From positions 62,001 to 126,000 of the forward strand of contig CDRNVI010000036.1 of assembly GCA_977017575.1 (NCBI GenBank): a stretch of DNA of 64,000 bases, given 5' to 3'. The stretch's first letter is position 1, and each line of letters opens with the position of its first letter. The translations under genes were made by a program, and so were the position numbers. The DNA comes from Paramoeba atlantica (Eukaryota > Protista > Discosea). The notes beneath the pieces were generated by a model. It had not been told where the DNA came from, searched no databases, and was given only the letters and a program-made list of their open reading frames with translations. This document shows, piece by piece, positions 8,581-38,070 of this stretch.

Positions 8581-10360
8581 GACCCTTCTTTCTATTAAGA
8601 TCCTTCTTTTTATTAAAGCAGTTACTGCGGAATGTCCGGACATGAGCACTCGGCAAATGCCTTAAAAAGATCGAAGGCCTCCGGTTCAATTGGGTTTGAT
8701 GCAATCTTGCAGAAATTGAATTGCGCCAGGTTGGGTCGGAGCAACTTGTTCATTCCTCCTCATGAGGAATCGGATGATCGAGTTGCTACCAAACTTCGCC
8801 AGAAAGTATTGGACTCGATGGCTGATTTGTGTCGGCTAAACTCACGCATTACAGTTGTTTGGACAATGAGTTATGACAAACCTTTGTTTCTATGGAGGGG
8901 CACTGTTGTGAAGCACAAACGGGGTGGCGGATGGTGGGTATGTTACGATCATACCCCCGGGATGCAATTTCCGTTTTCCCCCAAAGATCCGAGGGTGGGG
9001 AAATTGAACGAGAATTCGCTTTCCAAAAATTTGGTAATAAATATTGAGAAAAGCGGGGGAAATTATCCATGTACTTTTTAGAAAAGATTTTACATTTTTC
9101 TGAATTCTTTACATGGTGTGTCAGGGGTGTCGTGCATTCACGTGCCGTCGGAAGCTAACTATTAGTAAGGTAGTAAAGTGGTCAGAGGCTCAATGTCGAC
9201 ACTGGTTAAAATGCCACGATCTTGTTGCAAGGAAGGTGATATGCAACAAGCGCGGTCACTCCTCTCCATTGGAAATGCGATTGAGCGACGAGAAGTGGCG
9301 GTGTACCAAAAAGTGCAAAGGGGTGTATGACATTCTTGGGCCCCTGGTTCCAGGGAATGCAAAACGCACTGCAAAGCAAGTGCTGAAATTCATTATTCTG
9401 TACTCCCGTGGCGAGCCACATGCGGTATCAGCGGAGGAGACGGGCTTAAGTGTGACGACCATGGTCTGCGCCAAGCGTTGGATTCTATGATCGGGACGAT
9501 ACACGTACTTCGAATAATTCGTCGCCATGGAACATGGACCTCCATGCAGTGCGATGAAACGTTCTCAACGAGGAAGCGGGGAGGCAACAATCGTACTCGA
9601 CATGTCAGACGTGAAGGGCCGCAAGTCGCTCAAACTATAGTTGAAACGACAAGACAAAATAAAATCTCTGAAATATTTATGGACGTTGTCCCCGATCGAA
9701 GCACATCGTCACTTATTTCAAACATCGCTCTGGCTGCGGAATCGACAACTAGGATCTGGACTGATTCCGCTCGTCATAATCTGCAACTGCAAGGTAGATA
9801 CAAGTGGGAAAAGGTGGTTCACCGACGCGAGTTGGTAACCCAAGAAGGCGTTCATACAAACACAATTGAGTCGGCTAATTCACTTGTTAAGAAGACGCTC
9901 AAGCGTGAAGGGGGTGTACTCGGTCGGGGGGATGAAAAGCGCTGCAGCCGGGTACGAGCTTTAGCTGAGAAAAGCAATGGAAAGTTGAAGATAAATGGTA
10001 ACGACGCTTTACTTCGTATGCTGAAAAATCTTCGGTATTTCTGTGAAGTTATTGATATTTAATACATACAATGTATATTAGGTATACAAAGAGGTGTGAG
10101 AGAGAAAGTCGGAAAAGCACGTGTAAAGAGAGGTGTGGCAAAATAATTGTACGAAGGACCTTTTTCCCTGCATAAATAGACGAAATTATTGAAAAATAGA
10201 AAAAAAGCGAATTCTCATTCAATTTACCCCCGAGGGTAGTTGTCTGTGCAAGCAGAATCAGAGTCCCCAGGAAAAAACAGTCGATGAAGAAGCGTCGGTA
10301 TTACGTTCGGAGAGATGTTGAGCGTGGCAACCTCAACCAAGAGATACCCAATGATTCAAA
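8581..10360 (+). pseudogene. 5' end of an APE-type LINE ORF, split by the Merlin insertion (8581-8996 + 10238-10360)
   Basis: Removing Merlin plus one TSD restores QFPFSPKDPRVVVCASRIRVP, which is homologous to TLPFPPYPSTGVVLCAVQVSNP of the ORF at 13937. Two 18-bp repeats precede the ATG at 8632. Confidence 0.7.
8997..10229 (+). mobile_element. Complete Merlin (IS1595-like) DNA transposon, 1233 bp; transposase 9113-10062 with one frameshift
   Basis: TIRs GGGGAAATTGAACGAGAATTCGCTTT and rc GGGTAAATTGAATGAGAATTCGCTTT. 8-bp TSD CCGAGGGT (8989-96, 10230-37). Motifs QCDETF, IWTD and VHTNTIES. Frameshift near 9465. Confidence 0.92.
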
Positions 10361-10767
10361 CTTTGTTGGATCCTTGGTAGGATCCACTATCGGCCGCCAA
10401 GATAAACATTGAAATAAGAAAACAAAACAATAAAATATGCAGTAAGGATATTTTCTCGCATATTTAACACCTTTTATAGTCGTACTACGAGAATTATAAG
10501 GGAAAAAATTTCGGCCTAAAAAATATTTCAAGTTATAATTCTGACATGACAAAAATAAGCAGTCATCTAAGTGATATTTTTTTATAATGCGTATTTCATT
10601 TCCTTGACAAAAAATTGGAATAAAAAGTTTGGCTTCTTTCAGAAATAACTTTTCAATGTCTCTTGATTCTACAACTATCACGAAACTAATCTTCCAAATA
10701 ATAACGTGCTTCTTCGCCCATATTACGTGTCCCGATAAATACCACTAACACAAGACACGAAAAAGAC

Positions 10768-12120
10768 TTACTTCTTTCCTTGCGCCTTCTGCGCCGCCTT
10801 TGTCACCTTTCCGCCAGAGGGCTCTTTCTTCTGAACCTGCTTGATCACACCCACTGCCACCGTTTGTCGCATATCCCGGACAGCGAAACGGCCGAGGGGT
10901 GGGTACTCCGTGAACGTCTCCACGCACATCGGCTTCTGCGGTGTCATTCGGACCATAGCCGCGTCACCGTTCTTCACGCTCTTCGGATTCTTTTCCAGCT
11001 CCTTACCCGAGCGGCGATCGATCTTGGACTCCAATTCGGAGAACTTGCACGCAATGTGAGCCGTGTGGCAGTCCAGCACGGGAGCATAGCCTTGGGAGAT
11101 CTGACCCGGGTGATTGAGCACAATGACCTGAGCAACAAACGACTCGCATTCCTTCGGTGGGTCCTGTTTAGAGTTACCGCACACGTATCCTCGGCGAATA
11201 TCCTTTACAGATACATTTTTCACGTTGAACCCAATGTTCATGCCTGGGGTAGCCTCCGGAAGTGCCTCGTGGTGCATTTCAATGGACTTCACCTCCGTGG
11301 TCAGGTTCGTCGGAGCAAACGTGACAACGTCACCTGGGCGTAGCACACCCGTCTCCACACGGCCTACCGGCACCGTACCAATGCCGCCGATCTTGTACAC
11401 GTCCTGAAGAGGGAGACGCAGGGGTTTGTCGACGGGACGGACCGGGGCGTCAAGGTTGTCGAGCGCTTGAAGTAAAGTTGGCCCTTTGTACCACGACATG
11501 TTGGCGGACTGTTCAATCATGTTGTCGCCCATCCACCCGGAAATAGGCACGAACTGTACCTTATCCACGTTGTATCCGACTTTCTTGAGGTACATGGATA
11601 CTTCCTTCTTGATCTCATCAAAGCGGCTCTGGGAGTAGTTCACTGACTTGTCATCCATCTTGTTCACAGCTACAATCATTTGCTTTACACCCAGCGTGAA
11701 TGCGAGGAGGGCGTGCTCGCGTGTTTGGCCATCACCGCTGATGCCAGCTTCGAACTCACCCGTACCGGAAGCGATGACGAGAATAGCGGCATCGGCCTGG
11801 GAAGTTCCCGTAATCATGTTTTTAATGAAGTCACGATGTCCAGGGGCGTCGATGATCGTGAAAACGCATTTCGGGGATTCGAATTTCCACAAAGCAATAT
11901 CGATCGTAATACCACGTTCGCGTTCCGCCTTAAGCTTGTCCAGAACCCAGGCGTACTTAAATGATGCTTTACCCATTTCTGCTGCTTCTTTTTCAAACTT
12001 CTCAATCGTTCGCTTGTCGATACCGCCGCATTTGTAGATGAGGTGGCCTGTGGCAGTAGACTTTCCTGCGTCGACGTGACCGATGACAACCAGGTTAATG
12101 TGAATCTTTTCTTTACCCAT
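10768..12120 (-). CDS. EEF1A: Translation elongation factor 1-alpha, copy 1
   Basis: Full 450-aa EF-1alpha with [17 protein letters not shown] and NKMD. Confidence 0.99.
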
Positions 12121-12506
12121 TTTGTAAAAGAAAGTATCTATGTAAGCAGGTTCTTTGAATTGGAAGCTAACAATGGTAATGCGTGTTGTAATAGGACTAC
12201 GAAAGGTATCGCGCGTACCGTCCCTTAACCTGCTAGGTGATTTATTTGTTTTGTTTAAATGATGAGGATAAGTGACGTAATATCTATACCTGCATTGAGA
12301 AGTAATAAAACTAATCCATAGAGATCTACATGTAGGTCAATCTATTTTGAATCATTTAGCAACCTACATTTAGTGACCAGAAAAGTGATTTTATTTCGAA
12401 TCAAACTCTTCGGAAAATGATTATTTTAAATCACTGAAAAGTTTTCATTCGAGATCTATGTGCGATCTTTTAAGATCCATCAAATTATCATGCACAAATT
12501 AGCTTG

Positions 12507-13025
12507 GTCCAATACCTTGTATATCCAATTTATCCAATATGTCGAAAATCTCTACGAAAAAGCGTCTATTTAAATACATGTATAATGACGGACTATCCAA
12601 GCCTATTGAATGTGGAAGAGAGGTACTCCAGGGAGATATCCTTTCCCGAATGCTATTTCACCTCTCAATGGAACCGGTGCTGCGTTTCGTCCGGTCTAGC
12701 TGTCCCAAATATGGTATTACTTGGAACGACAGCGAGACGATTCTCAAAGCCTTTGCCGATGATCTTACCATTATCACAAACATTCCGAAGGAAATGCAAA
12801 ACGCTACCAATGTTCTGGTTAAAACACTTTCTTCGGTAGGAATGCGGCTTAATGTTCAAAAATGCAGGATTCAGCATATGGTAATGACGGCGGACTCAGG
12901 CTATATGACTCGGCGCCCCCAGATTCTAATCGATAGTACAAATTCTCCATATTTGCGATAAAGGAAGCACATTCTTGTACGTTCGCTCCTGGAGCGCAAC
13001 AAGGGAAAATACTCTTCCGAAAGTT
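12507..13025 (+). pseudogene. Non-LTR reverse transcriptase fragment
   Basis: LQGDILSRMLF, AFADDLTII and GMRLNVQKC motifs. Truncated at both ends. Confidence 0.85.
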
Positions 13026-19247: not shown

Positions 19248-19838
19248 CTATGCCTTCGAAATAAGAGTTTGCAAAAATCGAATAGTACATTTATGCGACA
19301 TACCATCTATTCGTCCTCTAAGTTGCACGTTCCCTTCAACATCCAAAACGGTCATAGAGGAAGGTAAGTGTGTGAAGATAACTTCACCTTCGAAATTGTT
19401 AAAGCCAAGATCCATGCAGCGCAACTGCTTTGGCAAGAAACACAACTCTACAGAACCTGAAAACATATTTTCACGAAGAGATAAATCTTCAAGTTTTGAC
19501 GGAAGAGACCGAAACGGCACTCGCCCGTCCAGATTATTCAGAATCCTTACCATTTCACAAAAAGGTCCTAAATCCAATGAAATAAGTGTGTCCGGGAGGT
19601 ACTCCCATGATGGGGTACCTGCAAGTCCGTGGCCCGACCAGATAATGTTCACAATTTCTCCTTTTTCGTTGCAATGTATGCCGACCCACTCCTCGATGGG
19701 GGTACTTTCATTCCAATGTGGTAGTAGACCTGTCACATTCGCCGTGAAACGAACTAGATCGTATACAGGAGGAAGCCGAGTACCGCTTACTTTGTTGGAT
19801 CCTTGGTAGGATACACTATCGGCCGCCAAGATAAACAT
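19248..19838 (-). CDS. LRR-family protein (part of the duplicated LRR-EF1alpha unit)
   Basis: WVGIHC cap and LP/LDL..N.F.G repeats. ATG at 19838. A signal-peptide-like upstream ATG frame is out of register, so a 5' frameshift is possible. Confidence 0.75.
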   Translation of the reverse strand: MFILAADSVSYQGSNKVSGTRLPPVYDLVRFTANVTGLLPHWNESTPIEEWVGIHCNEKGEIVNIIWSGHGLAGTPSWEYLPDTLISLDLGPFCEMVRILNNLDGRVPFRSLPSKLEDLSLRENMFSGSVELCFLPKQLRCMDLGFNNFEGEVIFTHLPSSMTVLDVEGNVQLRGRIDGMSHKCTIRFLQTLISKA

Positions 19839-20180
19839 TGAAATAAGAAAACAAAACAATAAAATATGCAGTAAGGATATTTTCTCGCATATTTAACACC
19901 TTTGATAGTCGTACTACGCAAATTATAAGAGAAAGAATTTCGGCCTAAAAAATATTTCAAGTTATAATTCTGACATGACAAAAATAAGTAATCATCTAAG
20001 TGATATTCTTTTATAATGCGTACTTCATTTCCTTGACAAAAATTTGGAATAAAAAGTTTGGTTTCTTTCAGAAATAACTTTTCAATGTCTCTTGATTCTA
20101 CAACTATCACAAAACTAATCTTCCAAATAATAACGTGCTTCTTCGCCCATATTACCACTAACACAAGACACGAAAAAGAC

Positions 20181-21533
20181 TTACTTCTTTCCTTGCGCCT
20201 TCTGCGCCGCCTTTGTCACCTTTCCGCCAGAGGGCTCTTTCTTCTGAACCTGCTTGATCACACCCACTGCCACCGTTTGTCGCATATCCCGGACAGCGAA
20301 ACGGCCGAGGGGTGGGTACTCCGTGAACGTCTCCACGCACATCGGCTTCTGCGGTGTCATTCGGACCATAGCCGCGTCACCGTTCTTCACGCTCTTCGGA
20401 TTCTTTTCCAGCTCCTTACCCGAGCGGCGATCGATCTTGGACTCCAATTCGGAGAACTTGCACGCAATGTGAGCCGTGTGGCAGTCCAGCACGGGAGCAT
20501 AGCCTTGGGAGATCTGACCCGGGTGATTGAGCACAATGACCTGAGCAACAAACGACTCGCATTCCTTCGGTGGGTCCTGTTTAGAGTTACCGCACACGTA
20601 TCCTCGGCGAATATCCTTTACAGATACATTTTTCACGTTGAACCCAATGTTCATGCCTGGGGTAGCCTCCGGAAGTGCCTCGTGGTGCATTTCAATGGAC
20701 TTCACCTCCGTGGTCAGGTTCGTCGGAGCAAACGTGACAACGTCACCTGGGCGTAGCACACCCGTCTCCACACGGCCTACCGGCACCGTACCAATGCCGC
20801 CGATCTTGTACACGTCCTGAAGAGGGAGACGCAGGGGTTTGTCGACGGGACGGACCGGGGCGTCAAGGTTGTCGAGCGCTTGAAGTAAAGTTGGCCCTTT
20901 GTACCACGACATGTTGGCGGACTGTTCAATCATGTTGTCGCCCATCCACCCGGAAATAGGCACGAACTGTACCTTATCCACGTTGTATCCGACTTTCTTG
21001 AGGTACATGGATACTTCCTTCTTGATCTCATCAAAGCGGCTCTGGGAGTAGTTCACTGACTTGTCATCCATCTTGTTCACAGCTACAATCATTTGCTTTA
21101 CACCCAGCGTGAATGCGAGGAGGGCGTGCTCGCGTGTTTGGCCATCACCGCTGATGCCAGCTTCGAACTCACCCGTACCGGAAGCGATGACGAGAATAGC
21201 GGCATCGGCCTGGGAAGTTCCCGTAATCATGTTTTTAATGAAGTCACGATGTCCAGGGGCGTCGATGATCGTGAAAACGCATTTCGGGGATTCGAATTTC
21301 CACAAAGCAATATCGATCGTAATACCACGTTCGCGTTCCGCCTTAAGCTTGTCCAGAACCCAGGCGTACTTAAATGATGCTTTACCCATTTCTGCTGCTT
21401 CTTTTTCAAACTTCTCAATCGTTCGCTTGTCGATACCGCCGCATTTGTAGATGAGGTGGCCTGTGGCAGTAGACTTTCCTGCGTCGACGTGACCGATGAC
21501 AACCAGGTTAATGTGAATCTTTTCTTTACCCAT
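20181..21533 (-). CDS. EEF1A: Translation elongation factor 1-alpha, copy 2
   Basis: Protein identical to copy 1. Confidence 0.99.
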
Positions 21534-22234
21534 TTTGTAAAAGAAAGTATCTATGTAAGCAGGTTCTTTGAATTGGAAGCTAACAATGGTAATGCGTGTT
21601 GTAATAGGACTACGAAAGGTATCGCGCGTACCGTCCCTTAACCTGCTAGGTGATTTATTTGTTTTGTTTAAATGATGAGGATAAGTGACGTAATATCTAT
21701 ACCTGCATTGAGAAGTAATAAAACTAATCCATAGAGATCTACATGTAGGTCAATCTATTTTGAATCATTTAGCAACCTACATTTAGTGACCAGAAAAGTG
21801 ATTTTATTTCGAATCAAACTCTTCGGAAAATGATTATTTTAAATCACTGAAAAGTTTTCATTCGAGATCTATGTGCGATCTTTTAAGATCCATCAAATTA
21901 TCATGCACAAATTAGCTTGGTCCAATACACCCCCGTTCATGCCATATTGTTACAGTTTTCCTGGACGTATGAGGTGCGCTAAAGGGGAAATAATGTCTGT
22001 TTTGAAGAGATCTCGGCAGGGGCTCCCGAGGAAAAATATTGCAAGGAACTGAAATATCGCATTGTGGAATCTTGTGTCGACCTAAAAAGTTTATTTGGAC
22101 TGAACTTGTGGAACCTTCTGTCGACCTAAAAAGTCAATTTTGACGGAAACCTTTGTTGGAGAAGACGGAAAGGATGAGTCAGAAGAGGAGCATATTTCTA
22201 CAACTTCTACAATCTATTAAGATGAGACGCTCAG

Positions 22235-23386: not shown

Positions 23387-24039
23387 TACATGTAGGTCAA
23401 TCTATTTTGAATCATTTAGCAACGTACATTTAGTGACCAGAAAAGTGATTTTATTTCGATTCTCTAAATCTGTTTCTTCGAAAAATGATTCTTTTAAATC
23501 ACTGAAAAGTTTTCTGTCGAGATCTATGTGCGATCTTTTAAGATCCATCAAATTATCATGCACAAATTCGCTTGGTCCCCGCCTGGGAGTACACCATTGT
23601 CTGTGCAGCGAGGCTCATAGTCTCCGTACCCTTCGGGGTATAACCGCCGTAGACGGTAACGTGTTGGATGCCCATATGCTCCGTATCCTTCGAGACACAC
23701 TTGCCGCTGCTTTTACATTTATACCTCAGAATGATGGGCCGAAGGTAGGGACAAATATTTAACGAAAAATAATTTTTTTTCGAAATTGCTCAGAAAGATT
23801 TTTCGAACGTTTGAAGTCATGTTCAGCGTCTCTGAGCGCATAATTTTATAAATTTCTTTAGTAACATGGCATACCAATTCACTCTATCGAAACATTTCCC
23901 ATCGGTAGATCACCCAGAAAGGTAACATTCTGGTGGACAGTACAATATGGCAGCGTAAGGAGACGCTCTTGTGGGCGTTTGAACGCCCCTAACGACTACT
24001 TGGGACTGGTCAGTGACTTTTTTTTCCATGTTCTGACTT

Positions 24040-24171
24040 TTTTTTTGTGACAGAACCGCCTTAGTTATCTGTCGCACACTGATCAGCCAAGTTATCTGTC
24101 ACACCCCTACCTCCCTAGTTATCTGTCATCTTTCCGCGAAAAATAGTGACAGATAAGTAGGGGGGGTACAG
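24040..24171. mobile_element. Right terminus of a CTGT-C7-type TA-flanked element (copy at ~36185-36316)
   Basis: AGTTATCTGTC x3 followed by inverted GACAGATAAGTAGGGGGGGTACAG|TA. Confidence 0.6.
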
Positions 24172-24356
24172 TATTTGAATCGTTTTTGAAAAAAATCAAT
24201 TTTTCATCAAATATTTATCCCTACCGTCCACTAAACTTTATAAGCGTATGACAAATAAGAATGAAAATCGCTCCCAGTTTTTGAAAATGACTTTCAAACT
24301 CACTGATTCGTCGAACGGAACAACATACGAATTCCTGGACATTCAATACAACCATG

Positions 24357-24846
24357 CGCCGCCCCTCCGCCGCCCCCTGCGCTGCGCCCTCCGCTGCCCC
24401 TTGCGTTGCGCCCTGCGCTGCCCTCTGCGCTGCGCCCTCCGCCGCTCTTTCACTGCCCTCCTCACCGTCATCTTTCACCGCCCATTGGCCGCCGCGTTGC
24501 ACTCCTCTTCGCCCCCGTCGCCGTCCCCTTCGCCGCCCCATTAGCCCCGCTGCGCCCTCCCCGCCACCGCCCCATACTCCCCTCAAATGACAGTACCCCG
24601 TGCCAAAAAAAGGCACTAAATAACTAGGGTAGCTGTCATTTTGACAGCGCGGAATGGCACCGCCCGGTACCGAACGTAACGAGGTACTAAGTAACTAGGG
24701 TAGATGCCATTCAGGATAATCTTTGGAGCGTGTTGTTTTTTTAATCCACCCTAAAAAGTTGGAATGGTTTTCTTGGGTCAAGGGGCGCCTTATTGCATTA
24801 CCTAAGGTGTAGGGGCATAGCGCACCCCACCTCCCTAGCTAACAAT
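24357..24846 (+). ncRNA. Structured non-coding element, copy A (5'-deleted duplicate of copy B)
   Basis: 24-bp GC-rich repeats, two hairpin modules (24585-24641, 24652-24712), a three-way-junction motif (24776-24831), and a 3' end followed by ATTAATT. Confidence 0.6.
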
Positions 24847-25144
24847 ATTAATTAGCTATTTGTTTTTTTTTGCCACACTTCTATTGGGCAATTAAGTATA
24901 CACAACGGCAAGCCACGCGTCTCAAAAAGAACCAAAAATGCCGCAGTGCGTGCACTGTCAAATCTCGACATGGTTACTTCAAGTCCAAACCATTAGATTT
25001 AAACATACGTTACAACCAAGAAATTATGATAGACGTGCAATTTTGTATGCGGACGCCTCCATGAATGGATGGGGCGCGCTCCTCATTCTACCAACAGGCG
25101 AAGTTTATGCTACAGGCGCAGCATGGGAAAAATTCGTCGAAATA

Positions 25145-28100
25145 CCCCCCCTCTCATTAATAATTATAATTATAATCTATAAACCTTTTTAGTTTAATGA
25201 TAATAATAATAGCAATAATGACGGTGGAGGAAAGCTCGGATGGTGGGGTGCGCTAGGCCCCGGCATTGTCGTCGCACAGGCAATGCCTCCTGACCAAGAG
25301 TAGCTATCGAACGCCGTTCACTCGCCAATCATGGACGGCGGAGGAACTCATCATTGCGTTCCCTCGTTGCATCGCGATCCCTAGGCACATAAGTGCGTGC
25401 TTGACGAAGCCGCCCTGGTCCTTCGTAAAGCTTCCGCACTTGCGCAGGAAGGATAACGTCCTATTTCCAGGGACCCCAAAACATGTAAATGCCAGGGGAA
25501 AGAATCTCATACTGCGTGCCGATGCCATGTCTTCGTGCTGGCACATTTTTTGAGCTTCCGCCTTCTCCAGGGTGCTCCCTGGGAACTTCGCTTCTTTCTC
25601 CACGTAAGAAGGAGCAAGGGGATTTACTACTGTTACGTCTACCAGGGTCAGTTCATTCCCTAGTAGGAAACAAATGTCCGGGCCGCGGCCGTTGTCGAAC
25701 CTTGGTTCGTGTACATCCGGGGAAAATCCGTAGCGACGGAGGAGAGAGATGAAGGAAGATTTTACGATATGGTGCCGCGACGCCGATGTGTGCCCTTTGA
25801 CTCTCTTGCAATTCAGAGAGTGAACCACAAAATCAGTGTTCCGAAAAGATTCTCCACATTTGCATTGCACCTCTGTCCATGAGGTTGGGGCAATGAGGTA
25901 CCGCATCCTCATGGCCACTTCCCATTCCGCTGGGCGCATGAGGTATTCCGCTAGGTTGGGAAGAGCTTCCATCCATGAGCGAGACATTTTGTTGTGCAAC
26001 TGATTGACCAATACGGATTCCATGGAAGAAGTAATCTTTTCCTTATCGTCCGAGAGTCTCTGACACGGATTCGGTGTTTCGCTGGAGTTGCTTTCAAAAA
26101 ACACGGCCCATAACTTGGTGCACAAAGTGTGCTTTTTCCCCGAATGGCAAAGTGCCCAAGAGATGAATTGTGAAAAGGGATTTTGAGAACAGTTCATCTC
26201 CTGGACGCCCCAAACCACCCATAAGGAAGGAAGCACAATTTTGAATCGCCGAGTCCACTCTGCCGTTCGCCTTCTCCGTGACAACTGGATGATGACATCT
26301 TAGTATACGTGTATGTATACAGTATACAGTATGTATGGTTCCATCTTGGCGCACCACAGTAGCGCAGCACGGCCCAAGCACATTGCTTGGAGAGAAGAGG
26401 AATCTTTGAGATGAACTCTTCAAATTTCGGAACTTGATTCAAGCTCCAATTCGTCTCCCGGACAGGTTCGCAAGAGACGTATGCTCCCAGCAATTTCTGG
26501 CCGAAAGGGCTATGTTGTACCCCCAAAGATTCCAGAAGCTGAAATTGACACTGCTTTCTCGTGCTCACGTGACACTTAGTGCGGTTAATCAATAGACCGA
26601 GGCGTCCAAAGCGCTCTTCAAGTAAGAGGTACGCGCGATGTACGAGTGCGGGAGGTCCGAGGAACGCAACATCGTCTAGGTATGCGCGCATCGTCATGTC
26701 AGGACCGAGTTCCTCCGCAGTTGACCGCAGTGTCTCTTGTATAGCTAAAGAGAACAACAGGGGCCCCATAGGATCCTCCTGTTTTACTCCGCAAAAGCTT
26801 TTTGTTTGGTTGTCATTAAACATCAGCCAGCTTGGAGCTCCGTATGAGAACAGAGTGATCCCCATGAGTTCTTACAAAACAGGCGTTTTTCGGAGTGCCT
26901 CAATTATAAACTTTCTTTGAAGTGAATTAAAGGCATTGTTGATGTCCAAAGTCCCTAAGATGCTTTCCTGTTCATTTAGAAAAGATTGTCAAAGGGTCCA
27001 AATGATGCTTTCGCATCCGTTCGGAGAACCTGCTCCGTGCTGGACATTTCCAAATATATCCGGAAGAGACGGCCGGACTCCGCGGATGATGATGATACCA
27101 GCTAATTTCAGGAACGCTTCTCCCACTGCGATAGGGCGACAGGCCGGGAGCTCGTCAGTGAGGGGGGAATTCTCTTTTCGGATGAGCAAGAGTCGGGATG
27201 TCGTAAGTGCGTTTCGGAGATCAGGCTTTAATTTATTGTTTAGAATGCCTTCCAGGGTCCACACCAGGCATTCGAAGACTTCCAGGATATCCAAGAGAGG
27301 CAAAATCAACTCCCGGGTCCATCCCGATGGACCGGGAGCGGCCCCCCGTGCCATGCGAGAAACTCCGTCTCGGACCTCTTCCTCGTTCAATTTAACATCC
27401 TTCGTTGGGCGGATAGCTGGGTCTGGTATAAAGTAGCCTTTTTTGTGGAGTTTTTCCGCTACCCGTAGCGCGACGTCCGGGGGAAGAGGAGGAGTTAGTG
27501 AAGAGTCGAGCGCCCGTGCTGCTCTGCCCAGTGCGCGTGCTCTTGCCAATCGATCAGCTCTCAGTGTGCTCGATATCGGGCTCTGCATCCTTTTCTCTGT
27601 TTTCTCGTGAAAAGTTGGTTCCATAGAAGTGCTTCGGTAGCGTATTTCATGTGCCATGGCTCTTTCACTCATACGCTGTGGAGTAAGGAACAGATAGCGT
27701 TTTACAGCTTCAGTTAATTTCCATACAATCGCAATTTTCCCTTCTTGCGCGATTTCGCGAAAAGGAAGGCATATCTTCTTGCAGATCTCCTTCCACGGGG
27801 GTATCTGCGCATGGCGTACCGAACGCAAGGAAGGACGAGAAAGAAGCTCTGTGAAAGGAACTCTTACTTATTTTGTATTTTATGGTTCATGCGGACGATT
27901 TATGTCGTTTGCTATTCTTTCGAGCAATGTTCCTGCGGGGGACGCATCCTCCGTTCGCTCCGTGGGTAGGATGGGCTTGTCTCCGCGAGGCGATTTAGTT
28001 TATAATTATAATTATAGTTTATAATTATTAATGAGATTCGATAAGTGATTTTTTCTTATTATGGACTTCAAATTCTTGATTTTCGAGACACTTCGTTCAA

Positions 28101-28276
28101 CTTGGAAGCAATTTTTAGTGTAAAGTATGTGGTACAGGTGTCTTTCTAGATAAAAAATGAAGAATTTGAGGTTTATAATTATCTAAGTGAGAATCAGAAT
28201 TATAATCTCATTAAATTTCTATAAACGATCCCTTTAAAGATTTTTGGAGGTTTATAATTATTAATGAGAGGGGGAG
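25145..28276. mobile_element. TA-flanked MITE (~330 bp net) hosting the CRE-like insertion
   Basis: TA|CCCCCCCTCTCATTAATAATTATAA ... TTATAATTATTAATGAGAGGGGGAG|TA, with internal copies of the TTTATAATTATTAATGAG motif. Confidence 0.8.
25197..27993 (-). mobile_element. CRE/SLACS-like non-LTR retrotransposon, 5'-truncated, frameshifted
   Basis: GAAPGPSGW, RPIAVGE, QEDPMGPLLF, YLDD, CKC..HSLNC..SRHH, GPDI and VDVTV (RT + RLE). (TTA)-rich tail. 9-bp TSD TTTAGTTTA at 25188-96 and 27994-28002. Confidence 0.88.
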
Positions 28277-28693
28277 TATACTCAGGCGAGGCCATGGCAA
28301 AATACAACGCCCTTTCAGCATTCGTCAAGCACTGGGAGAATATCAACTTAATCGATTTACGTGTTCGCTACCGGGAACAAGTGTTTGTTCCGCGGTGCGG
28401 AAATAGTGGTCTGATTCGTACAATATGCCAACAGAAACTTTAACTGAAATTGTCAAGCTAGCGCATGAATTCATGTGTCCGAAGCCGCGAAAACGCCGCT
28501 GATTTTTGGTGTCGGAAAAGACTTTTAATCACAATTGCGGTGGTTGTAAAACTACCGCTCTACACTCGATTATTGAAAAAAAAGTGAACAAAAACAGTGA
28601 AAATATAAAGAGGAACACAGTAATATAATAGAAGAAAAAAATATAAAAGGGGGCTCCGGTGGTCCAAAACTGAAAAAAAAATTTGAAAAAAAT

Positions 28694-28779
28694 GGGGGGT
28701 CCATGGGGGGGTCCAGGGGGGGGGTCCAGGGGGGGGGTCCAGGGGGGGGGTCCAGGGGGGGGGTCCAGGGGGGGGGGGG
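28694..28779 (+). repeat. (G6-12 TCCA)n minisatellite with G-quadruplex potential
   Basis: Seven G-runs separated by six TCCA(T) spacers. Confidence 0.9.
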
Positions 28780-29357
28780 CATGGTCGATCAAATTTTTTC
28801 GAAAAAATTAGTTTTCGAAAAAAAACTGCAGAAAGGGTAGCCGGGGTCTTGGCGCGCATTTTCCACCCCCCTACCCGGGGGTAACCCCCCCGCGTATCCG
28901 CAGGACGGGTCCGCCAAGTTCGGATTTTTTCGGAAAAAATTTTTTGAAAAAAAATTCAACTTGGCGAAAAAAATGACAAAAAAAATATTTTTCCAAAATG
29001 GTTTCCCCTATTGTATTTTGATAGTTTGGGACCTACACTAGCTTTCTACGCAGTTGCTTTCGCAAGGTATCCCTTCTTCTAACCGTGGTGCGCCCCCCAA
29101 AATGACCCATTTTTGACTAAAAAAGGTGAAAAAGTATTTTTCGGACCTAAAGGGGCATTTTTGTGTCGAAAGAATGGTATGGTTGGAGTCGCATTCTCCA
29201 CCCAATACGTTCGGTAGGCTTCCATTCATACCTACGAGTGATTTCCCACGCGCAAATGTCGGATTTAGTGCTCTGAGAGCAAAAATATGCGAAAATGACC
29301 CCATTTTTACCCGAAATTCGGCTATTTTTGGCTATAATCTTTCCGTTTTCCAGGCTA

Positions 29358-29480
29358 AATTTTCTTTTTTAGGCTCTTCGCTAAACGCGGCGGTAGTTTT
29401 CAACGCGAAGCGCGCAGCATGAGTGACTTCTAAGTTGAAAGCAACCACCGCGTTTAACGAAGAGCCTAAAAAAGAAAATT
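29358..29480. repeat. Palindrome with 47-bp arms (4 mismatches) and a 29-nt loop
   Basis: AATTTTCTTTTTTAGGCTCTTCGCTAAACGCGGCGGTAGTTTTCAAC ... GTTGAAAGCAACCACCGCGTTTAACGAAGAGCCTAAAAAAGAAAATT. Confidence 0.92.
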
Positions 29481-29599
29481 ATTGCGGCGGCTGTATAACT
29501 ACCGCCGTACCCTCGATTATTGAAAAAAAGGTTCTGTACCTTGCTTTTTTCCCTCTACTCCCCCCCACCCCCTTTATGACCTCGCCACATACAAAGTGG

Positions 29600-31655
29600 G
29601 AAATCCTCACAGGCGTTGCAGGACTCTTATAAGAGACCACGCAACGTAGATAGCCCATCCGCAACCTCTCTGACAGGTGCTGTACCGAACGCCTCCCGAG
29701 TCAGCCCTGAAGCTCCTATGAGAGGTTCACCTGAAAAGAATGAAACCGCAATAAATACAACTCGTTGATGTAAACATATTTGTAATGACAAATCAAAATG
29801 CGGCCATCCTTGCTGTAAGATTGCTCCGAGTCCGCCGTCCACTCAACCTCTTGACATTCTACCATGTAAACACCCCTGTAAGGACAAGAGTCTGTGCGGC
29901 CACCCCTGTTGTAAGAGACATCTTATTCCTATTCAACACGCCGTTCCATCTAACACAAAGGGGGAAGCCCGCGTTCCCGAGACTAGCAACACACATGTAA
30001 GTCCATTGTTGCGCATCTCGCCGCGCATTCACGTGCGGTGTCGCAGCTGCATCACTTTCGTCCGAGTCGGAACCTCGAAGGACGGACATCCGCTCGCGGC
30101 GCTCCTCCGGACTTAAAGACCCATTATGGATTCAGATAAACGGTCTCCAGTACATCTGGTGGAACGTGCTGGAACTGTGGAAAAAGGGGGCACCAGGCCC
30201 GGAACTGCAAAGCTAATCAACATCGCGACCGTGGGAAACCATTCCTCCCTAGACATGGCAAACGCAGGCGCGATGAATAAACATTGAACCCCAAAATTAA
30301 AATAAAGTATGAAAGAAAGAGTGGAAAGTAAAGTATGCATTCGTATCGAACACTAGAAAAGTATTGTTTTCACGTACATTTGATAGAGACTCAAAACAAC
30401 TCAAAATTTGTTTAGACCCCAAGCCGCATGGCTCCATCACACGTGACCAGCTTCGCGTACTATCCACATATTGTATTGACCAGAGAGAGATTACGTATTG
30501 GTTACTTTGGCCTTTTGCGACACTCTGAACTCGTAGGTCTTCAGACATCAGATGTGGAAATCAGCGGAAGCGATGTACTAATAAAAATTGGTAGAAATTT
30601 CTCTTTCCGACTTGGAATAAGGTGCAAGCCAATCGCTTGATAGCGGCCGCGCGATTTGGATGGAACGGCCAACAAACATGGTCGTTCCACTGTCTGCGCC
30701 ACGGCTGCGCTGGACACTTGACATGGCAAGAAGTTGATCTGAGCACGCGTCTTCGAAGAGGGCGCTGGATGTCAGAACTCACTGCAACACGTTACTCTAT
30801 GGAATAAAATAAATAATTTACAATCAGTCCCATTATTGTAAAGCATACAATGTATGCATCACTAGAACACTTTAGATAAACAGGTGATAGGTAGAATCGT
30901 ATCGAGAAGAACGAGAGATATGGGAACACACCTGCACACTGTCAATAAGGTAAAAGTCACAATAAACAGTGACAAGTGGACTAACTATAAAAGTTAAGAA
31001 ATGTGGAGATAGTGGCTGTGTAGGAGATAGATCACCTATAGTAGAAAAATTTATACATTGTATGATATAAATTATACTTCAAACACACTTCGCACACAAA
31101 ACAATGGATACCGAACTTCTAAGCTCTGAACTCTCCTCCCCTTTCGATACGTACTACGCACCGGAGGATAGCGATTTTCGCAGACGCGGAAGTTTTGCAC
31201 ACGACTCGGATACTCTCTACCCTCTACAAAATGTAGGTGGTATCCGGTTAGATAGCGCAGGCCTAGACCGCTTCGACAGGCAATCTCCCTTTTAGGCACT
31301 GATCATTTGCACCCAATACATTTAAAGACTGAGCCAGACTCCTCTCAGTATAGGAGGCACATTCGTTACCTACAGGAATCTGGGGTATTAATATCGACTA
31401 CAAAGGAGATGGTCCGAGGGTTCGGAAAGTACATAGCAGTACTTACGGATGGGACGTATTCGCGAGCACACACCATCCATTTTTCATCGAGGAACCTGCT
31501 TAGATCTCTATGTTGACATAGAGACGCATCGTGTTCGGCTGCGCTCAACAGAAAAATTTCGCATTCTTCCGGAGTATCAGAAGAACTAGAGAATGTTCTA
31601 AACCTGCTAAAGAAAAAGGGTATTGCCGTCCAAGCACGGTACGTAAATACAAACC
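29600..31655 (+). mobile_element. Tyrosine-recombinase retroelement remnant (gag-YR-RT/RH order, TATE/VIPER/DIRS-like)
   Basis: CCHC knuckle CWNCGKRGHQARNC (~30166-30207). YR motifs GYFGLLRHSEL, SFHCLRHG and GRWMSELTATRY (30428-30807). Decayed RT/RH pieces lie at 31100-31655. Confidence 0.75.
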
Positions 31656-32146
31656 TCGTTGTATCTTGTTGAAGTACCTTGTTGAATTATTTTTTTATTG
31701 TTGAAATATTTCCCCCATGTGCCCCTTCACCCCGCCCGGAAGAAGAAAACCGCCGTGCTGCTACCGCTTCCCTCATCGCCCCCCACCCCCCGCCGGCATC
31801 ATTACCGCTCTCTTGGCCACCCCTCGCGCCAGCCTCTTGGCCGCCCCTTCACCGCCCCTTGTGCCGCCCATGTGCTGCCCCGTGTGCCGCCGATGCGCTT
31901 CCCCTTGTGCCGCCCCCTGTGCCGCTTTTCTTGGAAAGGTCTACCCGGTACCAACAAAGCAAGGTACCAAACAACTAGGGTAACACTCTTTCCCGTGACG
32001 GAGTTGCCCGGTGTCAGAAAAACAAGACACCAAAGAACTAGGGCGAAATCCACACACACCAAATGGTCAAGGGCATCGCCTAATTAGGCGACGTTGGGGC
32101 CTAGCGAACCCCACCTACTTGAGCTCCTTGGCGCGCGACCAACAAT
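31655..32146 (+). ncRNA. Structured non-coding element, copy C (divergent subfamily)
   Basis: Shares the 5' block GTATCTTGTTG...ATTTCCC.CATGTGCCCC.TCACCCC with copy B. Has GC-rich repeats, two hairpin modules (31933-31993, 32000-32051), a three-way junction (32065-32115) and a 3' AACAAT. Confidence 0.6.
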
Positions 32147-32373
32147 CTGTAGGCAAAGGTTGACAGCACCATTGTATTATTTATTGGCTTCCTCAACAGG
32201 AAGATAAAGTCAGGTGCGTATCTTCTGTGGTCGAGGGCCCATTGCCGTTACTTAGAAGTACTCATAATGAATGTAAAAACCATTCATCATAGTGGCAGTT
32301 AATAATTATTATAATAGAAATTATTAATAATTTCTATTATAAAAAAAATCCCAATTATTAATAATTATTAATA

Positions 32374-32440
32374 CTGTCCCCCCCCGTTTAAGCGCACCTC
32401 GTTTTCCGTGAAAAGTGCGCTTAAACGGGGGGGTCTGAAT
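32374..32440. mobile_element. Left terminus of a CTGT-C7-type TA-flanked element
   Basis: TA|CTGTCCCCCCCCGTTTAAGCGCAC...GTGCGCTTAAACGGGGGGGTCTGAA. Same layout as the left end at 61808. Confidence 0.65.
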
Positions 32441-33030
32441 CAGTACGTAAAAAAAAATCTTCAATGGTACTTGAAAAGATCAAATTTGCGGCCGTATATG
32501 GGAAAAATGTATCTAACGGGAGGAAATTTCACTTTCTTTCGGACTGACACAATGTTCGGCAGGTGGACTAAGGAAGGGTGCGGCGAAAGACACGGAATTG
32601 TCCGATTGTGTGCATCAACCAAGGGTCACGAACACGTTAAAAACTTTATTGTAATACTTTTATGGCACTGGAAACGTAGTATACATGTAAATGGTTGATG
32701 GTTGCACTGAAAGTGTATATAAAGCGCTCCCTGGTACCATAGTGTCCGATTGAATTTTAATTTTTCACGCTCAGGGCATCGTTCAGAAGATCTTAATAAT
32801 TATTAATAATCGCTAATATTTTTTTAATAATAATCATTATTAAAGCCCAAATTTATCAATAATTCTGTCACTATGCCCAATACAAACATTTAATTCGATA
32901 GTCGAATCCTATATTCTACACTCCGTTTTCAAAGCATCTAGATAAGAAAATGAATATTACAAAAAACGTCTCGCGTCATACTGTGCCATCCACAGGAGAG
33001 GTGCGCATCCGCGACGACAAAACACGAAAA

Positions 33031-33621
33031 CTATGCTTTAGAAATAAGAGTTTGCAAAAATCGAATAGTGCATTTATGCGCCATACCATCTATTCGTCCT
33101 CTAAGTTGCACGTTCCCTTCAACATCCAAAATGGTCATAGAGGAAGGTAAGTGTGTGAAGATAACTTCACCTTCGAAATTGTTAAAGCCAAGATCCATGC
33201 AGCGCAACTGCTTTGGCAAGAAACACAACTCTACAGAACCTGAAAACATATTTTCACGAAGAGATAAATCTTCAAGTTTTGACGGAAGAGACCGAAACGG
33301 CACTCGCCCGTCCAGATTATTCAGAATCCTTACCATTTCACAAAAAGGTCCTAAATCCAATGAAATAAGTGTGTCCGGGAGGTACTCCCATGATGGGGTA
33401 CCTGCAAGTCCGTGGCCCGACCAGATAATGTTCACAATTTCTCCTTTTTCGTTGCAATGTATGCCGACCCACTCCTCGATGGGGGTACTTTCATTCCAAT
33501 GTGGTAGTAGACCTGTCACATTCGCCGTGAAACGAACTAGATCGTATACAGGAGGAAGCCGAGTACCGCTTACTTTGTTGGATCCTTGGTAGGATACACT
33601 ATCGGCCGCCAAGATAAACAT
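33031..33621 (-). CDS. LRR-family protein, duplicate of 19248-19838
   Basis: Near-identical protein (two visible substitutions). Confidence 0.75.
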   Translation of the reverse strand: MFILAADSVSYQGSNKVSGTRLPPVYDLVRFTANVTGLLPHWNESTPIEEWVGIHCNEKGEIVNIIWSGHGLAGTPSWEYLPDTLISLDLGPFCEMVRILNNLDGRVPFRSLPSKLEDLSLRENMFSGSVELCFLPKQLRCMDLGFNNFEGEVIFTHLPSSMTILDVEGNVQLRGRIDGMAHKCTIRFLQTLISKA

Positions 33622-33963
33622 TGAAATAAGAAAACAAAACAATAAAATATGCAGTAAGGATATTTTCTCGCATATTTAACACCTTTGATAGTCGTACTAC
33701 GCAAATTATAAGAGAAAGAATTTCGGCCTAAAAAATATTTCAAGTTATAATTCTGACATGACAAAAATAAGTAATCATCTAAGTGATATTCTTTTACAAT
33801 GCGTACTTCATTTCCTTGACAAAAATTTGGAATAAAAAGTTTGGTTTCTTTCAGAAATAACTTTTCAATGTCTCTTGATTCTACAACTATCACAAAACTA
33901 ATCTTCCAAATAATAACGTGCTTCTTCGCCCATATTACCACTAACACAAGACACGAAAAAGAC

Positions 33964-35316
33964 TTACTTCTTTCCTTGCGCCTTCTGCGCCGCCTTTGTC
34001 ACCTTTCCGCCAGAGGGCTCTTTCTTCTGAACCTGCTTGATCACACCCACTGCCACCGTTTGTCGCATATCCCGGACAGCGAAACGGCCGAGGGGTGGGT
34101 ACTCCGTGAACGTCTCCACGCACATCGGCTTCTGCGGTGTCATTCGGACCATAGCCGCGTCACCGTTCTTCACGCTCTTCGGATTCTTTTCCAGCTCCTT
34201 ACCCGAGCGGCGATCGATCTTGGACTCCAATTCGGAGAACTTGCACGCAATGTGAGCCGTGTGGCAGTCCAGCACGGGAGCATAGCCTTGGGAGATCTGA
34301 CCCGGGTGATTGAGCACAATGACCTGAGCAACAAACGACTCGCATTCCTTCGGTGGGTCCTGTTTAGAGTTACCGCACACGTATCCTCGGCGAATATCCT
34401 TTACAGATACATTTTTCACGTTGAACCCAATGTTCATGCCTGGGGTAGCCTCCGGAAGTGCCTCGTGGTGCATTTCAATGGACTTCACCTCCGTGGTCAG
34501 GTTCGTCGGAGCAAACGTGACAACGTCACCTGGGCGTAGCACACCCGTCTCCACACGGCCTACCGGCACCGTACCAATGCCGCCGATCTTGTACACGTCC
34601 TGAAGAGGGAGACGCAGGGGTTTGTCGACGGGACGGACCGGGGCGTCAAGGTTGTCGAGCGCTTGAAGTAAAGTTGGCCCTTTGTACCACGACATGTTGG
34701 CGGACTGTTCAATCATGTTGTCGCCCATCCACCCGGAAATAGGCACGAACTGTACCTTATCCACGTTGTATCCGACTTTCTTGAGGTACATGGATACTTC
34801 CTTCTTGATCTCATCAAAGCGGCTCTGGGAGTAGTTCACTGACTTGTCATCCATCTTGTTCACAGCTACAATCATTTGCTTTACACCCAGCGTGAATGCG
34901 AGGAGGGCGTGCTCGCGTGTTTGGCCATCACCGCTGATGCCAGCTTCGAACTCACCCGTACCGGAAGCGATGACGAGAATAGCGGCATCGGCCTGGGAAG
35001 TTCCCGTAATCATGTTTTTAATGAAGTCACGATGTCCAGGGGCGTCAATGATCGTGAAAACGCATTTCGGGGATTCGAATTTCCACAAAGCAATATCGAT
35101 CGTAATACCACGTTCGCGTTCCGCCTTAAGCTTGTCCAGAACCCAGGCGTACTTAAATGATGCTTTACCCATTTCTGCTGCTTCTTTTTCAAACTTCTCA
35201 ATCGTTCGCTTGTCGATACCGCCGCATTTGTAGATGAGGTGGCCTGTGGCAGTAGACTTTCCTGCGTCGACGTGACCGATGACAACCAGGTTAATGTGAA
35301 TCTTTTCTTTACCCAT
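33964..35316 (-). CDS. EEF1A: Translation elongation factor 1-alpha, copy 3
   Basis: Protein identical to copies 1 and 2. Confidence 0.99.
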
Positions 35317-36374
35317 TTTGTAAAAGAAAGTATCTATGTAAGCAGGTTCTTTGAATTTGAAGCTAACAATGGTAATGCGTGTTGTAATAGGACTACGAAA
35401 GGTATCGCGCGTACCGTCCCTTAACCTGCTAGGTGATTTATCTGTTTTATTTAAATGATGAGGATAAGTGACGTAATATCTATACCTGCGTTCAGAAGTA
35501 ATAAAACTAATCCATAGAGATCTACATGTAGGTCAATCTATTTTGATTCATTCAGCAACGTACATTTAGTGACCAGAAAAGTGATTTTATTTCGATTCTC
35601 TAAATCTCTAAATCTCTTTATTCGAAAAATGATTCTTTTAAATTACTGAAAGGTTTTCTGTTGAGATCTATGTGCGATCTTTTAAGATCCATCAAATTAT
35701 CGTGCACAAATTCGCTTGGTCCCCGCCTGGGAGTACACCATTGTCTGTGCAGCGAGGCTCATAGTCTCCGTGCCCCTCGGGGTATAACCGCCGTAGACGG
35801 TAACGTGTTGGATGCCCATATGCTCCGTATCCTTCGAGACACACTTGCCGCTGCTTTTACATTTATACCTCAGAATGATGGGCCGAAGGTAGGGACAAAT
35901 ATTTAACGAAAAATAATTTTTTTTCGAAATTGATCAGAAAGATTTTTGGAACGTTTGAAGTCATGTTCAGCGTCTCTGAGCGCATAATTTTATTAATTTT
36001 TTTAGTAACATGGCATACCAATTCACTCTATCGAAACATTTCCCATCGGTAGATCACCCAGAAAGGTAACATTCTGGTGGACAGTGCAATATGGCAGCGT
36101 AAGGAGACGCTCTTGTGGGCGTTTGAACGCCCCTAACGACTACTTGGGACTGGTCAGTGACTTTTTTTTCCCATGTTCTGACTTTTTGTTTGTGACAGAC
36201 TCCTCCTAGTTATCTGTCGCACACTGATCGGCCTAGTTATCTGTCACACCCCTACCTCCCTAGTTATCTGTCATCTTTCCGCGAAAAATAGTGACAGATA
36301 AGTAGGGGGGGTACAGTATTTGAATCTTTTTTGAAAAAAATCAATTTTTCATCAAATATTTATCCCTACCGTCC

Positions 36375-37403
36375 ACTAAACTTTATAAGCGTATGACAAA
36401 TAAAAATGAAAATCGTTCCCAGTTTTTGAAAATGACTTTCAAATTCACTGATTCGTCGAACGGAACAACATACGAATTCCTGGACATTGAATACAACCAT
36501 GCACAGCGCACGTATAATCTCACTGAAAAATTTCTAAACAAGATTCCAATAAAAAATCTCTTTCCACGTGCTTGAAACCACTATCGCATGATTAATTTAT
36601 GCGAGTACTGTATCTTGTTGTTTATTTTTTAAAACTATTTCCCACATGTGCCCCGTCACCCCTACCGGACGGAGACCCCCTCTTTAGCCGCCCATTTTGC
36701 CGCCGCGGACGCCGCCTTTTGCCCCCGCCGACGCCCCCCTGTACTCCTTACTATTGCCCCCTCCGACGCCCCTTGCGTTGCGCCCTCCGCCGCCCCTTGC
36801 GCTACGCCCTCCGCCGCCCTCTGCGCTGCGCCCTCCGCCGCTCTTTCACTGCCCTCCTCACCGTCATCTTTCACCGCCCATTGGCCGCCGCGTTGCACTC
36901 CTGTTCGCCCCCGTCGCCGTCCCCTTCGCCGCCCCATTTGCCCCGCTGCGCCCTCCCCGCCACCGCCCCATACTCCCCTCAAATGACAGTACCCCGTGCC
37001 AAAAAAAGGCACTAAATAACTAGGGTAGCTGTCATTTTGACAGCGCGGAATGGCACCGCCCGGTACCGAACGTAACGAGGTACTAAGTAACTAGGGTAGA
37101 TGCCATTCAGGATAATCTTTGGAGCGTGTTGTGTTTTTAATCCACCCTAAAAAGTTGGAATGGTTTTCTTGGGTCAAGGGGCGCCTTATTGCATTACCTA
37201 AGGTGTAGGGGCATAGTGCACCCCACCTCCCTAGCTAACAATATTAATTAGCTATTTGTTTTTTTTTGCCACACTTCTATTGGGCAATTAAGTATACACG
37301 ACGGTAAGCCACGCGTCTCAAAAAGAACCAAAAATGCCGCAGTGCGTGCACTGTCAAATCTCGACATGGTTACTTCAAGTCCAAACCATTAGATTTAAAC
37401 ATA
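36375..37403 (+). pseudogene. TATE/VIPER-like RT remnant hosting structured element B
   Basis: YEFLDIEYNHAQRTYNLTEKFLNKI. Removing 36598-37249 restores ETTIA*LISYLFF..PHFYWAIKY. Confidence 0.55.
36598..37242 (+). ncRNA. Structured non-coding element, copy B (full length, 645 bp, 7-bp TSD) - candidate SINE-like element
   Basis: Flanked by ATTAATT (36591-97, 37243-49), with no TIRs and no credible ORF. 24-bp GC repeats, modules at 36981-37037 and 37048-37108, three-way junction at 37172-37227. Confidence 0.65.
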
Positions 37404-38070
37404 CAGGGGTGGGCGCCTTCAGAGTGGGGGGGCCTAAAATTCGTAAAACTTGACCAATTTTGGAAAGCAATAGCCGATTCGAGAGCTCTTAATATTTCCA
37501 GTGTAATGGTAGCATCCGTTGCCTGGTTTTAGACATTCGAGATAAATGACAGAAAAACAAAGAAATTATTTTTGCCCGAAGATGCAATTTTTCATTTTTT
37601 TTGCGCCGTTAATGCCTCAAAAACGTGTACGATCGCGAATATCACGGTTTCCCTTCCAGAGAGATCTTCTTCACCACCTGGGAAGGTAAAGCCGTCGCAT
37701 CGCATGCTTCTCGTGGACCATTATTTTCGTACTGGGTCCTACAATGCTACAGCACGCAACTTTGAAGTAGCGGAGATCTCCTCTCTTGTATCGAGAGTGC
37801 ACACAAGGCACTTCAAACCGATCTCAAAAGTACTTGCGAGAGGACTATAAAGAGTGTCTCCAAGCGCTTTCTTCGTTATTGAGAAAAAAGGAGGAAGTTG
37901 TGGGTACTGAATTCTTTTTTGTAGAAAATAGACTTTTTGGCTTAAAAGTCGCTCGAGTGAAAAGGACCTCGGATTCGGAACGATTGGGTCGAAAAACGGT
38001 ATTATACCAAATATTTCCAAAATCGGACAAAATACAAGACCTGTAGGGGGGCGGGGTAAAAGAGGCTGAA
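37404..38070 (+). mobile_element. Truncated CAGGGG-family Tc1/mariner-type element with an HTH-like remnant
   Basis: TA|CAGGGGTGGGCGCC..GGGGGGGCCTAAAATTCGTAAAAC resembles the 6096 TIR. HRMLLVDHYFRTGSYNATARNF resembles transposase N-terminal HTHs. Confidence 0.55.

Follow-up and report, generated by a model that had tools for sequence, protein, structure and literature searches.

The window analyzed here, a 64,000-nucleotide stretch (C36:62001-126000) of the 45.7-Mb kinetoplastid-type genome that we searched, contains three EF1-alpha gene units with 97–99% identity (10360-12515, 19789-21928, and 33572-35722) and mobile elements between them. Downstream of the third unit lies A645, a 645-bp non-coding insert (36598-37242, plus strand) bounded by direct ATTAATT repeats at 36591-36597 and 37243-37249 on the same strand, a putative target-site duplication. 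A sequence-only reading of this DNA had reported the length of the insert, its flanking repeats, its lack of terminal inverted repeats, and its lack of a credible ORF, and all four points agreed with our analysis. Terminal inverted repeats of the kind that mark a DNA transposon or MITE were sought in A645 and none were found; nor does A645 have a terminal repeat tail or poly(A), with no poly(A) at 37237-37249. The only long ORF (36599-37012, 138 aa) was rejected as a gene: it sits in stop-poor GC-rich repeats, is overlapped by ORFs in other frames and on the opposite strand, and has no Pfam match. A chance 7-bp repeat at the spacing seen for A645 was present in 2.5% of random pairs of windows and ~12% of AT-matched ones, and the repeat alone is weak evidence for retroposition of A645 (chance ~0.03–0.12).

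All recognizable parts of A645 lie on the plus strand. Ten nucleotides inside the 5′ boundary is a relic of the spliced-leader 3′ end that keeps 12 of the last 13 leader bases (36608-36620) and is the sole such match in the 64-kb window, where 0.07 were expected. It is followed by a T-rich leader (36621-36641), which aligns with four other independent 5′ ends, and by a C-rich block around CATGTGCCCC, in which 36642-36660 aligns with the start-codon region of an APE+RT LINE (ATG at 36646). GC-rich 24-bp tandem repeats (36755-36879) lie within a wider C-rich stretch (~36680-36975). The 3′ half contains two covarying bulged hairpins (module 1, 36984-37035; module 2, 37051-37106), a small hairpin, and a terminal three-way junction (37172-37236) composed of a closing helix, a variable hairpin, and a conserved GGGG..CCCC hairpin. 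The insert ends in AACAAT (37237-37242), which together with the next ATTAATT resembles the ATT-rich tails of a divergent relative (copy C) and of a CRE-like LINE, both in the window and described below.

A genome search with A645 returned three full copies and one deleted copy, on contigs C36 and C41. Because the flanks are identical at all four, these copies represent one insertion that was later copied by segmental duplication; A645 records one old event and not the multi-copy family that had been proposed for this sequence. Self-comparison of the window showed that 23387-25008 duplicates 35523-37404 and that 24362-24846 (plus strand) is the same insertion, from which a 255-bp deletion took away the 5′ junction, in accord with an earlier call of a segmental duplicate at 24357-24846. 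The two remaining copies are on C41 in a paralogous region that is 98% identical to 23400-37400 and that could represent either a haplotig or a segmental duplication. DNA searches for an empty site with both flanks gave, adjacent to the insertion point, only the four paralogous filled sites. The first 163 bp of A645 matched nowhere else in the genome, and by the search used the first 385 bp had no genomic copy beyond the four paralogous ones. Further downstream, 37399-37947 is a 550-bp repeat with many genomic copies that are 85–98% identical; ~110 nt of it recur inverted beside each copy, which gives it a MITE-like look.

Protein similarity identified the sequence hit by A645 as a decayed RT fragment of a host retroelement (36324-36572, plus strand). 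This upstream flank matched ~50 genomic loci within ORFs of 775–1043 aa. Compared with an intact paralogous ORF, which runs on into an RNase H-like region, it gave a BLASTP E of 4e-12, and an ORF of the host type gave a weak RVT_3 match. The host therefore reads as a decayed RT/RNase H element, compatible with the label "TATE-like" that it had been given. The downstream flank had no significant similarity to the intact host paralog (p 0.62). When joined, the flanks read in one frame, which carries two stops and aligns with the intact paralog only in its upstream part, so the proposal that excision of the insert restores a host RT frame was not borne out.

What kind of transcript gave rise to A645 is suggested by its head. 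We inferred the spliced-leader sequence from 816 dispersed genomic matches and from full-length copies. A sequence resembling the kinetoplastid leader was first noticed beside a LINE poly(A) tail; its 19-nt 3′ part gave the 816 matches, and a reversed control gave 0. At the loci fetched, full or 5′-shortened leaders stood directly upstream of T-rich leaders and the ATG codons of retroelement ORFs. The three-part head (relic, T-rich leader, and start block) recurred at five independent loci, and at L012 (minus strand) its ATG opens an ORF that encodes an endonuclease domain, is interrupted by a nested copy of the sineX repeat discussed below, and continues into an RT domain. As in an internally deleted LINE, the A645 block can be aligned with the 5′-terminal part of the APE+RT LINE, start codon included. 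Because the same head opens an APE+RT ORF at L012, the head of A645 appears to be a LINE 5′ end copied from trans-spliced RNA. Searches for a tRNA, 7SL, or 5S head or other pol III promoter origin gave nothing in Rfam, whether at the gathering score or at E values up to 1, and ARAGORN found no tRNA in A645. We rejected a classical pol III SINE, as the head lacks tRNA, 7SL, and 5S sequence and is that of a LINE. The earlier term "SINE-like" holds loosely: a 3′ end in common with a LINE is present and a tRNA, 7SL, or 5S head is not.

At the 3′ end, the hairpin modules that had been noted from the sequence are real and under structural selection. When 13 module instances from four elements were aligned as one bulged hairpin, 86.8% of cells paired, compared to 29–39% with the partner slid, and both sides had changed at 11 of 17 pairs. 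In the inner 6-bp helix, 98.7% of cells paired and three positions were compensating. At another locus (L034 3022-3390), C-rich repeats run straight into two modules. The terminal junction had the same fold in A645, sineX, copy C, and the tail of the CRE-like LINE, and the sequence of its first hairpin differed among them. Its folding energy was not significantly different from expectation (z-scores −0.9 to +0.6); support for the junction comes from conserved topology and sequence, not from thermodynamics. Both modules have a conserved unpaired strand (TAACTAGGG; 37017-37025 and 37088-37096) that is complementary at 8 of 9 positions to the 3′-terminal part of that junction (CCCTAGCTA; 37229-37237), which could reflect a long-range contact or chance.

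Copy C (31655-32200, plus strand) has the same order of parts as A645, with a 5′ block, C-rich repeats, two hairpin modules (31936-31990 and 31999-32053), and a three-way junction (32062-32146). Two leader relics lie in tandem at 31661-31684, and its start-codon block is at 31713-31731. A relative with this layout had been placed at 31655-32146. The layout stood; because homology to other loci reaches at least 32200, copy C probably ends beyond 32146. Downstream of copy C, after an AT-rich stretch, 32377-32438 forms a perfect 19-bp palindromic hairpin (C7 GTTTAAGCGCAC ... GTGCGCTTAAAC G7).

The 3′ 254 bp of A645 (its positions 386-639) are 83% identical to the internal core of sineX, an abundant repeat of ~545 bp with at least 85 copies (reference copy C16:70186-70725; L031:8184-8728). 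A search with the sineX tail gave 85 first-look candidates, and the 40 that were scored all had 99–100% identity. Among 22 copies compared, which were 97–100% alike, direct repeats of 8–15 bp flanked 15 (mismatched flanks, 0.6%), nine were 5′-truncated and started at internal positions 43-128, and all had the same (CAT)n tail at the 3′ end. Such a pattern marks target-primed reverse transcription. Many duplications start with AT or CAT, as expected if the tail pairs with a nicked target. sineX is young and non-coding. Besides the (CAT)n end it has a tail domain of 150 nt, a junction, and three hairpin modules, and the 3′ junction of A645 (..CAAT, then ATTAATT) looks like sineX junctions. It would thus be sineX, and not the 7-bp repeat, that provides the real support for retroposition of A645. 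In a search for a partner of the sineX tail, no tail match adjoined the end of any listed LINE ORF. At L034:5433-6815 (C3:617432-618814) and also at C1:128-952, a sineX-like variant forms a close inverted pair, with ~430 nt more non-coding sequence past the junction that includes another CTAGGGT motif.

A645 has a 3′ end in common with LINEs, as classical SINEs do, both through the junction of the CRE-like (RLE) LINE and through elements that match our models just after APE-type ORF ends. Two LINE 3′ ends that we read directly carry one hairpin module 27 nt after the ORF stop, and their C-terminal peptide closes ORFs of 1118–1145 aa elsewhere. In a second APE-type group (42% identical), all five listed copies have a module-model match ~45 nt past the end of the ORF and on its strand, a link that rests on match coordinates (pairs C29:115520/115415, C29:130105/130000, C43:663548/663841, C54:82769/82664, and C66:329625/329520). 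By coordinates, the match at C29:130000 is the 3′ end of the same LINE whose 5′ end at L012 bears the head block. A junction model whose only sources were copy C and the RLE LINE gave matches at C56:367348 and C72:18317, ~40–50 nt after two further APE-type ORF ends, and at C21:234672, downstream of an RLE fragment. Modules or junctions occur just past APE-type ORF ends at eight places by coordinates and in the two copies read directly. Both the APE+RT head and the modules after APE-type ORFs indicate LINEs of the APE type; the junction, taken by itself, indicates the RLE lineage as well. To place the APE LINE in a clade, we ran a word-based protein search, which gave only unnamed or unrelated RT proteins, a protein-atlas search, which gave generic RT clusters, and a PDB sequence search, which was blank.

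The CRE-like LINE itself spans ~25217-29000 on the minus strand. It includes an RT piece with an RVT_1 match (26197-26871) and a C-terminal ORF (25307-26299) in which CCHC and PD..D nuclease motifs were read by eye. These features agree with the CRE-like RT LINE previously described in the window and would assign it to the restriction-like endonuclease (RLE) kind. Sequence and fold place a three-way junction directly past its ORF (25217-25306, minus strand), starting 8 nt after the stop codon and matching copy C over 56 nt and A645 and sineX over ~30 nt (z 6–8.5; 0 of 300 shuffles reached the score). Only two or three copies of this decayed lineage exist; close copies are found only on C36 and C41, and a fragment on C21 is 79% identical. 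More than 100 other RLE LINE copies have at most 56% protein identity to the window copy, and related copies have unrelated flanks. Ten of the other RLE copies, fetched from abundant families, terminate within a few bases of the stop codon or in poly(A), and neither hairpin modules nor a junction were present in them.

We conclude that A645 is probably a non-autonomous, non-coding, LINE-dependent retroposon, built like an internally deleted LINE and derived from a trans-spliced RNA. Retroposition of a non-autonomous RNA had been proposed from the sequence alone and gains support from the leader relic, the target-primed hallmarks of sineX, and the modules in common with LINE 3′ UTRs. In the pathway we envisage, A645 would have been transcribed within a polycistronic Pol II unit and then trans-spliced, and a LINE reverse transcriptase would have recognized its folded 3′ modules in trans. 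Target-primed reverse transcription would have started at an AT-rich nick, with the ..AAT end pairing with the target, and would have left the 7-bp duplication. Segmental duplication later multiplied this single insertion to four copies.

For the helper of A645, we put the chances of an APE-type LINE at about even, and such a LINE is a more likely helper than the CRE-like one. A SINE-like RNA mobilized by the CRE-like LINE via the common terminal three-way junction seems rather unlikely to us. R2-type reverse transcriptases bind their own 3′ UTR, and a junction 8 nt past the RLE stop, with 30–56 nt in common with A645, sineX, and copy C (z 6–8.5), would suit such a mechanism; a near-identical junction also lies downstream of the C21 copy of the lineage, on its strand, although ~1.3 kb further away than expected. 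However, this lineage is rare and decayed, the ten other RLE loci have no module or junction, the 5′ block and hairpin modules belong to APE-type LINEs, and stacking of retroposon tails is reported for this genome, so that the RLE LINE may not own the junction that follows it. Variable duplications of 8–15 bp, as in sineX, are moreover more typical of APE-type nicking. The claim that A645 was CRE-mobilized is unproven; the CRE-like LINE has only its last 30–56 nt in common with A645.

It is less probable still, and in our estimate improbable, that A645 is a patchwork in which separate or template-switched events joined a 5′ fragment to a 5′-truncated tail fragment, with ATTAATT present by chance. 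Such an origin would suit a single event with a unique 5′ 385 bp, no tail, and a repeat of just 7 AT-rich base pairs, and chimeric elements do exist: at L026:2813-3235, a leader relic and the first 52 codons of an RLE-LINE N-terminus are fused to the last codons of an APE-type LINE and a hairpin module. Yet copy C independently has the same part order, the third locus on L034 also leads from C-rich repeats directly into two modules, and A645 cleanly interrupts the host RT fragment. We regard it as very improbable that A645 is a LINE-independent piece of a tyrosine-recombinase retroelement, either terminal or solo, and related to it as SIRE is to VIPER. The variable target duplications, 5′ truncations, and microsatellite tail of sineX and the modules directly after LINE ORFs speak against such a piece, and no recombinase gene was seen beside any copy, even though sineX-like sequences form close inverted pairs on C3 and C1 and the host is an RT/RNase H element. 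More tentatively than the retroposon reading itself, and with less than even confidence, we suggest modular recognition, in which template switching would probably have exchanged bulged-hairpin and junction modules among LINEs of the APE and RLE types and several non-coding families. Each of these elements would be copied from trans-spliced mRNAs, so that leader relics pile up in tandem over rounds of splicing and retroposition.

Like A645 as we read it, the elements of the trypanosomatid RIME/ingi, NARTc/L1Tc, and SIDER systems are short non-coding retroposons from the 5′ and 3′ ends of APE-type LINEs that are mobilized in trans and have target duplications at their flanks. In the prevailing view, the LINEs of trypanosomatids produce unspliced Pr77 transcripts, and their known hitchhikers derive from ingi or VIPER. 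Elements of the RIME/NARTc/SIDER type carry the 77–79 nt Pr77 signature, a driver of unspliced transcripts, and end in poly(A) (PMC1874656, PMC2323293), and the trypanosomatid L1Tc makes unspliced transcripts from Pr77 (PMC1874656). By contrast, the head of A645 is a spliced-leader relic and a LINE start codon, and its tail, which lacks poly(A), consists of covarying hairpins and a three-way junction. In this free-living-type relative, then, template RNAs would carry the spliced leader, and hitchhikers would reuse modules of two LINE types.

In stringent SINE-LINE pairs such as UnaSINE1/UnaL2 and in internally deleted R2 elements (SIDEs), a folded 3′ end is common to the non-autonomous element and its LINE. 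In general terms, A645 resembles them in its folded LINE-type 3′ end, the presumed RT handle; unlike them, it has no pol III head, and its modules follow the ORFs of two LINE types (APE and RLE). CORE-SINE and V-SINE superfamilies are animal pol III SINEs with a conserved central domain and differing heads and tails, and the 254-bp core common to A645 and sineX, which likewise differ in heads and tails, recalls them. In dinoflagellates, truncated and sometimes tandem leader relics at the 5′ ends of retrogenes mark retroposition of trans-spliced RNA (PMC6050394, PMC5585692). Those are cellular retrogenes, whereas the relics described here head kinetoplastid mobile elements, an arrangement for which no report was found in the literature searched. 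If our reading is right, such relics would provide a sequence tag with which to date and count kinetoplastid retroposition, as for dinoflagellates.

Like CRE, SLACS, and CZAR, the window LINE has an RT followed by CCHC and PD..D nuclease motifs. According to a 2025 survey, CRE-clade elements target a single position in spliced-leader RNA genes and have poly(A) at the 3′ end (PMC12278014); by contrast, the window copy lies between EF1-alpha genes, not in a spliced-leader RNA gene, and ends in the junction and an ATT-rich tail. The same survey lists four TE clades for trypanosomatids together with Bodo saltans. A search of its text gave no non-autonomous derivative of CRE, and the one passage retrieved that ties non-autonomous copies to a clade dealt with INGI (PMC12278014). 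If correct, our reading would also supply small covarying RNA elements to test how LINE reverse transcriptases choose templates. The A645 copy itself would have a modest yield, because it records one old event.

Several side observations concern the 5′ ends and junctions of other LINEs in this genome. Many LINE copies start with a full or 5′-shortened leader, often right after the poly(A) of an upstream element, and leader-headed LINEs form head-to-tail stacks (examples at L019:621, L027:2352, L033:8475, L038:7675, and L050:2296). The L026 chimera is followed by a sineX-type tail in an unexpected orientation. At L050:2354-2665, the N-terminus of an RLE LINE ORF (MVLTRSK...) matches an LsmAD domain of the ataxin-2 type (PF06741, E 8e-6, above the curated cut-off).
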